From the sequence record PV740454.1: a DNA stretch of 64,000 bases; one strand, 5' to 3'. The number at the start of each line of letters is the position of its first letter. The first letter of the stretch is position 1. Position numbers and translations under genes: made by a program. The notes below the pieces were generated by a model. It was not told the DNA's origin. It saw only the letters and a list, made by a program, of their open reading frames with translations, and did not search any database. Shown here in pieces: positions 53,030 through 54,639 of the stretch.

Positions 53030-53962
53030 ATGAAAAGCACAATGTTTTTGAACAACATCACTGTTATCGATCACGCATGGGTAGATGATGTTGGTGAAAT
53101 TAATGGTAATAGCTACAATCTTTGTGTAGAAATTACAGGCGAAGTCGATGAAACTGAACAAGTTGTCATCGACTTTAGTGGTTGCAAGAAGGCAATCAAA
53201 CAACTTGTAGACGAGTCGAAATTCGCTCTAGACCATCGACTAGTCATTGTTGACGGGTTCAGCGACGCTGTTCTGTCACTCGTTGAAGATCGTGATCGCA
53301 TTCAAATCAATACGCCAGTTTTTCACGCTGTATCAACAGTAGATGATTGGTATCAAGTCATCACACCAAGCGAATTAATTGAAGCAGATTTCAAAATCCC
53401 AAGCGATTCTCTGTACATGTCTTACGTTACTGAGTATCTTGAAGATATGCTTCTTTCTCAACTAAAAGAACAAGGCTATCCCGTTACACATGTTCTCGTA
53501 GAGCTATCAGAGAAGTTTGACTTGCCTTCTTGGGCTAACAGTCACGTTGAATTCAATTACGCTCACGGGCTGCGTTCAAGTACTTCATACGGCTGTCAGA
53601 ATATCGCGCATGGTCATCGTTCATTCATTGCAGTAGATCAACACTTGAATAGCAACGGTCGCAAGGTACTGAAGCGAATTGCAAAAGAAATGAGCGGCTA
53701 TCTAGCATGGTCAGACAACATTCGCAAAGAAGATGAAGTATCGTATCAGTCACAGCGCGGGAATTTCTATTTACGACATGAGAACATCAAAGTCATCCCG
53801 ACTGAAACGACTGTTGAGAATCTAGCAAGCTATATTGCATCAACATACGAAGAAGATTTTCAGCGTATGGGTGTTCAGCGAGTTTGGGTTTCTGAAGGTC
53901 TTTCGAAAGGGGCGGTTGTTGATATCAAGTTAAACAAAGCACTTTTAGGTAGAAATGCATGA
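53030..53962 (+). CDS. queD: Tandem T-fold 6-carboxytetrahydropterin synthase (QueD2-like)
   Basis: VVIDFSGCKKAIK...LDHRL in domain 1; HGL...CQNIAHGH and PTETTVENLA in domain 2. Confidence 0.8.
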   Translation: MKSTMFLNNITVIDHAWVDDVGEINGNSYNLCVEITGEVDETEQVVIDFSGCKKAIKQLVDESKFALDHRLVIVDGFSDAVLSLVEDRDRIQINTPVFHAVSTVDDWYQVITPSELIEADFKIPSDSLYMSYVTEYLEDMLLSQLKEQGYPVTHVLVELSEKFDLPSWANSHVEFNYAHGLRSSTSYGCQNIAHGHRSFIAVDQHLNSNGRKVLKRIAKEMSGYLAWSDNIRKEDEVSYQSQRGNFYLRHENIKVIPTETTVENLASYIASTYEEDFQRMGVQRVWVSEGLSKGAVVDIKLNKALLGRNA

Positions 53963-54639
53963 ATAGCGTACAAGATAAATCAGTTCTAATGGGTGATGAA
54001 TTACTTTTCAGTGAAAGCGAATGGGTTTCATTCGATACGATGAACACTGAAAAGAAAATTCTATCAAACCCAATATTCGACGAAGGTCTGAACAGAATTA
54101 TCAAGCAGTACACTCCAAAAACAGACACAGCGTTTATTTCGCTGTGTACTACTACTCGACCATATGAAAATAGTCGCAAGTGGAAAACGTTCATGGAAAC
54201 GTTTGGCAGTAGTGCTGACTTGATTGTTATTTCGAACGGCGGGGTAATCCCACAGAAGTTTTGGCACAGTTATCCGTATCTGAACTACGACGGTGACCCA
54301 AAAGTCAATCCACAAACTGAACTTTATTGTGAAATCTGCGAAGAGCGTGTTTATCGTTTCTTTAGTCAGGTGAAGTTCAAAAACATCGTCGCGAACTTTA
54401 AGCACGTACAACGCAACACTGAAGCAATCAAGAGCGCGTTGAAGCGACTTAAAGACGACGGTCACATTGAAAACTATGTTGTTCTACCAACTGTTGAGCA
54501 GTATGAAGAATTGCAGTCTCGTGGGTTCCCGAAAGGGAAAGTTTTCCCAGATGTCGATGATAAGATACTTGAACACTTGCGTTCGGCAGTACATTCGTAC
54601 TCGCCACCGAAAGAAAATAGCTTAGCTAACTTCTTTTAG
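53959..54639 (+). CDS. ArcS / DUF5591-like protein
   Basis: FISLCTTTRPYENSRKW resembles the ArcS LPCSxxKPYSxS motif; VISNGGVIP...YPYLNYD; sits inside the que cluster. Confidence 0.6.
   Translation: MNSVQDKSVLMGDELLFSESEWVSFDTMNTEKKILSNPIFDEGLNRIIKQYTPKTDTAFISLCTTTRPYENSRKWKTFMETFGSSADLIVISNGGVIPQKFWHSYPYLNYDGDPKVNPQTELYCEICEERVYRFFSQVKFKNIVANFKHVQRNTEAIKSALKRLKDDGHIENYVVLPTVEQYEELQSRGFPKGKVFPDVDDKILEHLRSAVHSYSPPKENSLANFF

Follow-up and report, generated by a model that had tools for sequence, protein, structure and literature searches.

ArcS2 of Vibrio phage CZ01: a virus-specific archaeosine synthase core and its possible RaSEA-independent route to 2'-deoxyarchaeosine in DNA

ArcS2 of Vibrio phage CZ01

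Vibrio phage CZ01 encodes ArcS2, a stand-alone C1 catalytic core (DUF5591) of archaeosine synthase (ArcS), in the 64,000-nucleotide stretch of record PV740454.1 analyzed here (the window). The gene is an open reading frame (ORF) on the plus strand at 53959..54639 with an ATG start; it shares its first 4 nt with the end of the QueD-like ORF that precedes it (53030..53962). The 226-aa product carries LCTTTRPYENSRKW, and the motif-bearing stretch of its translation is AFISLCTTTRPYENSRKWK. An earlier note on this DNA had recognized a 226-aa ORF that retains the motif Cys and had taken it for an ArcS catalytic core standing alone, without a PUA domain; our data bear out both statements. DUF5591 (PF17884) was matched at residues 45 to 165 (E = 3.9e-11; 43.5 bits against a gathering score of 26), and Pfam gave no PUA and no TGT domain, the four further matches all being sub-threshold (E of at least 0.06). 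The NCBIfam archaeosine synthase subunit alpha gave a local match alone (29.8 bits against a cutoff of 440), PHROGs holds no family for the protein, and no second DUF5591 paralog was found within the window by hmmsearch.

An AlphaFold2 model calculated from 69 relatives is one compact alpha/beta domain (pLDDT 94.6, pTM 0.91), and its top structural matches are the C1 parts of ArcS from H. volcanii, T. acidophilum, and M. jannaschii. The only solved structure of this fold is that of AF0587 of Archaeoglobus fulgidus (PDB 2q07), a split ArcS consisting of C1, C2, and PUA. It was matched with a Foldseek E of 5e-7 and a VIA Z of 15.4 (root mean square deviation 2.3 Å over 139 residues, 21% identity), the next VIA match being at Z 6.6. 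The motifs of the two proteins align, whereas AF0587, unlike ArcS2, has the canonical PC..KPY..S..H and a PUA domain. The structural homology to ArcS, on whose presence the earlier note had made its reading depend, was therefore found. A UDG/SMUG1-like fold, which would have hinted at base flipping, was also considered and discarded, with Z of at most 5.5 and thus in the range of generic alpha/beta matches.

Across the gene cluster, the window is 97.3% identical to Vibrio phage nt-1, which has the same host species, V. natriegens. CZ01 ArcS2 is the syntenic ortholog of nt-1 VPFG_00169 (YP_008125320), with 224 of 226 residues identical; the nt-1 protein has equal length and motif and the same place in the gene order, after QueD and before FolE, with DpdA2 and QueC downstream. 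The proteins differ in S24P and K103Q only, from which no functional difference is expected, and there is hardly any doubt that the CZ01 ORF is ArcS2. YP_008125320 was listed as "ArcS" by Hutinet et al. 2019 (PMC6884629, supplement) and renamed ArcS2 by Hutinet et al. 2023 (PMC10516641), who describe a C1 core (DUF5591) only, with a "slightly degenerated" PC-x3-KPY-x2-S-x2-H motif. Hence, both the gene and the fact that its product stands alone have been published before, and the finding in CZ01 is in this respect already known. In the literature searched, we found no newer papers on ArcS2, CZ01, or amino-acid-conjugated deazaguanines in DNA.

Canonical euryarchaeal ArcS, which works together with the radical-SAM protein RaSEA, has a homologous C1 core; it and ArcS2 have Cys, Pro-Tyr, and Ser of the motif as well as a YP..NYD block in common. 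Its substrate is the preQ0 nitrile already in nucleic acid, which would also be the substrate of ArcS2. In contrast, canonical ArcS is built from a TGT-like Nt domain, C1, C2, and PUA, and ArcS2 has C1 only; no RaSEA partner was detected for ArcS2, and its setting is the DNA of a bacterial virus. The active-site signature of ArcS2, L62-C63-T-T-T-R67-P68-Y69-E-N-S72-R-K74-W75 (54142..54183, plus strand; Cys63 codon at 54145-54147), is a clade-specific variant of the full canonical motif PC-x3-KPY-x2-S-x2-H, in which C, P-Y, and S are kept and P is changed to L, K to R, and H to W. A further difference is an N-terminal extension of ~40 residues (with G12, L16, and W22) that is conserved and well modeled and lies outside the aligned stretch of the distant profile matches.

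A virus-restricted clade without RaSEA

New in our analysis are the virus-restricted clade to which ArcS2 belongs, the retention of K and H in natural RaSEA fusions, the absence of RaSEA, and the conserved neighbors. An exhaustive profile search for relatives of ArcS2 gave 285 cluster representatives; 75 had an E<1e-30, and most of these are 200 to 260 aa long. Among 69 relatives, Cys63, Pro68, and Pro98 are invariant, and Tyr69, Asp87, Ser92, and Tyr110 are nearly so. The near clade has the motif S-L-C-T-x-T-R-P-Y-x-x-S-x-K-W, to which the window protein conforms with SLCTTTRPYENSRKW; at the two diagnostic positions, Arg was found in 85 of 86 and Trp in 80 of 86 sequences, and His in none of the 86. 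The remaining DUF5591 clades have Lys (40/40) and, less regularly, His (18/40) at the canonical positions. In a quick maximum-likelihood tree, the R/W clade, which comprises 78 rows and two K-W revertants, is set apart from every K-type row, fusions included, with an SH-aLRT of 96, and CZ01 ArcS2 falls inside it.

The distribution of the clade is viral. Among 50,697 GenBank phage records, ArcS2 was found in nt-1 and CZ01 only. The back-translated clade motif has a single match in the window (54142-54183; chance expectation, 0), and the same signature recovered 14 of the 24 ArcS2 loci in our sample and 21 IMG/VR contigs. Neither a protein-pattern scan nor a search with the back-translated motif through 596 Gb of genome contigs from bacteria and archaea revealed cellular homologs of the clade. 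In the viral loci, ArcS2 almost always directly adjoins QueC, and its linkage to DpdA and preQ0 synthesis genes recurs in ~20 distinct loci. The usual neighbors are QueC, QueE, and a glutamine-amidotransferase-like (Gat) protein, and QueE-ArcS2-QueC-Gat-FolE-DpdA2 is a recurrent operon.

The fusions of C1 to a RaSEA-like radical-SAM domain are instructive for the meaning of the motif. These proteins (P0123, P0125, P0133, P0137, P0140, P0148, P0149, and P0156; 402 to 488 aa) were among the distant matches of the profile search and are encoded on archaeal-looking contigs (loci L030, 5916-7121, and L031, 8001-9317, among them). As in ArcS2, their C1 comes without TGT-like and PUA domains. Unlike ArcS2, they have a RaSEA-like radical-SAM domain with CxxxxCxxC (TIGR01210) and lie on the other side of the tree, and all eight keep K and H in the form PC/QC..KPY..S.TH. 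One of them is encoded 2 kb from an ArcTGT with PUA. Judged by their domains, the fusions are candidates for a minimal, single-chain archaeosine synthase.

The earlier note had stated that the window has no radical-SAM gene with CxxxCxxC, and indeed, no such motif is present in window ORFs of at least 80 aa. A profile built from the eight natural RaSEA::C1 fusions had no match in the window or in ~30 viral ArcS2 loci. Furthermore, when all phages in GenBank, the complete genomes of CZ01 and nt-1 among them, were searched by tblastn with the RaSEA half of one natural fusion, there was no Vibrio-phage match at E<=1, and thus, with the profile result, the earlier "no RaSEA" extends to the whole genome. 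Two radical-SAM genes are nevertheless present outside the window, one QueE-like and one with a twitch domain. The first is VPFG_00333 in nt-1, outside the region matching the window, and is listed as QueE in the 2019 supplement (PMC6884629); none of its 17 NCBIfam matches is a RaSEA family.

The second, VPFG_00320, is a protein of 350 aa encoded at 59964-61019 in nt-1 (positions 4965-6020 of locus L003, minus strand) and at 61152-62201 in CZ01, outside the window. It is ~89% conserved in KVP40-like vibriophages, some records calling it QueE or MoaA-like, and is unrelated to ArcS2. As a stand-in for RaSEA it was discarded: its best family is N_Twi_rSAM, no RaSEA family is among the best 25 of its 50 NCBIfam matches, and its gene lies ~175 kb from the cluster; moreover, KVP40-type phages without ArcS2 have the protein at 89% conservation. 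In one lineage of large uncultured phages (L010, L011, and L028; 2133-4123, 11852-12877), ArcS2 does not stand beside QueC, and three radical-SAM ORFs lie less than 10 kb from it, one twitch-type (437 aa) and two others (222 and 341 aa). These, too, were rejected as RaSEA: they are generic or twitch-type, with no RaSEA family among the matches listed.

In sum, the clade-wide R/W motif, the virus-only distribution, and the lack of RaSEA indicate that what had been described as a "degenerated" motif is the fixed signature of a virus-restricted, RaSEA-free lineage. In the sequences compared, the switch from K to R and from H to W co-varies with the absence of RaSEA. Since the canonical Lys and His are replaced by Arg and Trp in ArcS2 and are kept in C1 domains fused to RaSEA, this points to a changed chemistry.

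Some members of the clade have an architecture of their own. Two uncultured phage contigs, L004 (2158-15108) and L007 (1116-8686), have two ArcS2 paralogs each, both with the catalytic Cys motif, which are 41 to 51% identical within and between the loci and are accompanied by two or three DpdA2-like paralogs; in L007, a PurD-like ATP-grasp gene lies immediately upstream of one ArcS2. These paralogs suggest that a single genome has more than one modification derived from deazaguanine, or more than one target specificity. Other members are fusions with one of three recurrent domains: a C-terminal one of ~300 aa (P0012 and P0014), an N-terminal one of ~110 to 230 aa (P0070 and P0072), and a C-terminal one of ~100 aa (P0061, P0062, P0075, and P0077). 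An ORF of locus L051 (1878-3467) is listed with these fusion proteins, and P0012 is encoded on a small contig along with genes for H-NS, ParDE, and phage Rep-O. The fusion partners were dropped as a clue to the stage at which ArcS2 meets its substrate, having no match to QueC, Gat, DpdA2, QueE, FolE, or QueD and belonging to unnamed clusters of the atlas.

The gene cluster around ArcS2

The gene order in the window is QueD - ArcS2 - FolE - DpdA2 - QueC - Gat, and ArcS2 hence sits among DpdA and the genes of preQ0 synthesis. All of these genes are on the plus strand. The first encodes a QueD-like 6-carboxytetrahydropterin synthase of double length (53030..53962; 310 aa), matched by Pfam PTPS in two stretches (E = 9.9e-12) and locally by NCBIfam QueD; it has its own PHROG, phrog_14221, whose function is unannotated, and corresponds to the nt-1 QueD, YP_008125319, of the supplement of PMC6884629. 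No mutual similarity between its two PTPS-type halves was detectable by BLASTP. ArcS2 is followed by FolE, a GTP cyclohydrolase I (54696..55370; Pfam GTP_cyclohydroI, E = 8e-60; phrog_2197), and by the preQ0-inserting DNA guanine transglycosylase DpdA2 (55456..56850; phrog_10773, E = 8e-212; no Pfam match), the syntenic ortholog of nt-1 VPFG_00171 (YP_008125322), the founding DpdA2. The preQ0 synthase QueC comes next (56866..57642; Pfam QueC, E = 1.6e-52). Its true start is likely at ~56926, given that the nt-1 annotation is 717 nt long and that the Pfam match begins at residue 22.

The last gene of the cluster (57642..58250; phrog_12378) encodes a class-II glutamine-amidotransferase-like protein of 202 aa (Ntn, with an N-terminal Cys) that begins with MCGLF. 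In the atlas it is assigned to GATase_6/7 clusters with a score of 0.96, and its structure resembles the Gat half of Gat-QueC fusions. It adjoins QueC in 51 phage records, where it is sometimes called a nucleophile aminohydrolase and mostly hypothetical, and does so in several of the viral ArcS2 loci as well; it goes unmentioned in the text retrieved from the two deazaguanine papers. Its fold and its position next to QueC make the pair look like a split Gat-QueC, and the protein is a candidate ammonia supplier. Phages with this arrangement include the KVP40-type, which make preQ1-type bases. In the KVP40- and VH7D-type sister phages, QueF lies between DpdA2 and QueC, and ArcS2 is absent.

Farther upstream, two plus-strand ORFs at 50359-51279 and 51282-52118 both start with MKFSEYQ, are 32% identical over ~200 aa, and have a weak DUF6934 match; the common start and the identity mark them as tandem, diverged paralogs. 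Since nt-1 has one annotated gene of 837 nt at this site, CZ01 appears to have an extra copy. The ORF at 49781-50065 (plus strand) encodes a DUF4326 protein (E = 1.9e-27), called NrdA.1 in the nt-1 annotation.

The product of ArcS2

We propose that ArcS2 may be a virus-specific, RaSEA-independent amidinotransferase cut down to the C1 core of archaeosine synthase. In this model, the enzymes of the phage, including the QueE encoded elsewhere in its genome, would make preQ0, and DpdA2 would swap a guanine of the DNA for it, a step demonstrated for nt-1. ArcS2 would act on preQ0 after this insertion. Its Cys63 would attack the nitrile to give a thioimidate, as the invariance of the residue and the precedent of QueF and QueF-L suggest, and a nitrogen nucleophile would resolve the thioimidate to the formamidine, 2'-deoxyarchaeosine (dG+). 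The nucleophile would most simply be ammonia, possibly from the neighboring Gat-like protein. On balance, we lean toward dG+ made with ammonia as the principal physiological product of ArcS2.

The homology to C1, the invariant residues, the motif switch together with the lack of a detected RaSEA, the preQ0 operon, and the Gat-like neighbor all speak for this model. Direct, NH4+-dependent formation of an amidine has precedents in QueF-L, which makes G+ from preQ0-tRNA via a Cys thioimide and free NH4+, and in M. jannaschii ArcS, for which direct use of NH4+, Gln, or Asn has been reported. RaSEA-independent routes from preQ0 to G+ are also known from the Gat-QueC of phage 9g and Crenarchaeota, which like QueF-L is not homologous to DUF5591; Gat-QueC is a fusion, and CZ01 has, besides ArcS2, QueC and a separate Gat-like ORF.

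The published experiments were done with the nt-1 proteins. According to PMC10516641, E. coli with DpdA2 alone has 926 or 1607 preQ0 residues in DNA (dPreQ0) per 10^6 nt; with DpdA2 plus ArcS2, the values fall from 926 to 0 and from 1607 to 11, and dG+ appears at 4 or 7 per 10^6 nt. The same paper reports no dG+ with ArcS2 alone, with DpdA2 alone, or in a queD deletion strain. For virion DNA of nt-1, PMC6884629 gives 232 dPreQ0, 72 dADG, and 44 dG+ per 10^6 nt. ArcS2-dependent formation of dG+ is published but quantitatively tiny.

Several observations weigh against our model. In a comparable plasmid assay, 9g DpdA with Gat-QueC gives 22,750 to 45,000 dG+ per 10^6 nt, and the yield with ArcS2 is ~10^4-fold below this. 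9g DpdA alone gives 6.5 in that assay, and thus, the 4 to 7 dG+ that depend on ArcS2 are near background. More than 99% of the dPreQ0 is lost upon ArcS2 coexpression without a matching product, and in virions of nt-1, dPreQ0 is still five-fold above dG+. Sister phages devoid of ArcS2 have the Gat-like protein too, which may therefore serve QueC only, and the nitrogen donor of ArcS2 is putative, being proposed by analogy.

Low dG+ plus lost dPreQ0 would also be accounted for if ArcS2 acted mainly before insertion, on free preQ0 or a nucleotide, whether by holding it as a stable Cys thioimide or by turning it into a base that is a poor substrate for DpdA2. In E. coli, dPreQ0 would have collapsed because the overexpressed enzyme drained a small host pool of preQ0, and not through conversion within DNA, whereas the dPreQ0 kept in virions would have been made under a preQ0 supply boosted by the phage. 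In keeping with this, the thioimide that QueF-L makes with free preQ0 is stable and unreactive (apparent dissociation constant, ~8 uM), ArcS2 nearly always adjoins QueC, the enzyme that releases preQ0, and the authors of PMC10516641 propose that DpdA2 "possibly" inserts G+. However, T. kodakarensis ArcS is inactive on the free base, a nucleoside 5'-phosphate being needed or preferred, G+ as a free base is unstable, going back to preQ0, and action of ArcS2 on free preQ0 is itself putative and drawn from analogy. We regard this explanation as unlikely, although worth keeping in mind.

The earlier note had proposed that a lysyl or other amine adduct persists in the phage DNA. In its generalized form, ArcS2 would join the dPreQ0 nitrile to a primary amine, lysine or some other, the untrimmed N-substituted 7-formamidino-7-deazaguanine would be the main product, and dG+ would be a minor side product with ammonia. 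The gap in the mass balance fits this idea, as do several features of the published work. In PMC10516641, a two-plasmid control (VH7D DpdA2 plus DpdM, in a queF deletion) gave 696 versus 630 dPreQ0, and hence DpdA2 activity was not abolished by a second plasmid as such, at least for this related DpdA2; the mass spectrometry of plasmids was targeted, and the paper mentions neither lysine nor RaSEA. This type of assay is able to register 45,000 dG+ per 10^6 nt. Furthermore, the ArcS proteins of T. kodakarensis, T. acidophilum, and M. acetivorans are lysine transferases, whose adduct with preQ0 is then cleaved by RaSEA. With no RaSEA-like sequence detected in CZ01, nt-1, or the viral ArcS2 loci examined, an adduct made by ArcS2 might stay untrimmed, and the uncultured phages with two catalytic ArcS2 and two or three DpdA2 paralogs hint at diversified products.

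On the other hand, free T. kodakarensis ArcS transfers no lysine without RaSEA, and therefore, a canonical ArcS that has lost RaSEA is predicted to be inactive, with no adduct building up. The ArcS2 clade has other residues in place of the canonical K and H, and nt-1 ArcS2 with DpdA2 gives dG+ in E. coli, a host without RaSEA (PMC10516641). In virions of nt-1, dPreQ0 is the most abundant species detected, no unknown nucleoside is reported for nt-1 in PMC6884629 or PMC10516641, and the gap in mass has more mundane explanations. Amine addition thus has a small but real share of the probability in our view. That the virus-only clade mainly makes an undescribed N-substituted 7-formamidino-7-deazaguanine and not archaeosine, which would account for the vanished >99% of dPreQ0, is improbable.

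A main activity of ArcS2 as nitrile hydratase or amidohydrolase, with dADG formed by attack of water on the thioimidate, is very unlikely, and so is a weak, decaying enzyme: dADG (72) does exceed dG+ (44) in nt-1 DNA, overall modification levels are very low, and an amidohydrolase role was raised by the 2019 authors, but according to the same paper (PMC6884629), dADG also forms when dPreQ0 oxidizes spontaneously and is found in phages without ArcS, and the diversity of the clade, its strongly conserved active site, and its confident fold are unlike a decaying gene.

In sum, we favor synthesis of dG+ with ammonia, and our analysis frames the question of ArcS2 more sharply, as that of a virus-restricted clade with a fixed K-to-R and H-to-W switch in the active site, encoded in a conserved operon alongside QueC and a glutaminase-like protein. 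RaSEA, which is absent alongside the motif switch, is needed by canonical ArcS even for the first step. The functional evidence for the product of ArcS2 consists solely of the 4 to 7 dG+ per 10^6 nt, set against a loss of ~1,000 to 1,600 dPreQ0. If the model proposed here is true, ArcS2 would provide a RaSEA-independent route to archaeosine in DNA. If an amine adduct is made instead, it would be a new, amidine-linked DNA base, and if such an N-substituted base were the main product, phages with two ArcS2 and several DpdA2 paralogs would write more than one of them. Host glycosylases that attack dPreQ0-DNA have been described (10.1101/2025.10.29.685425), and further derivatization of dPreQ0 is therefore a plausible counter-move of the phage.

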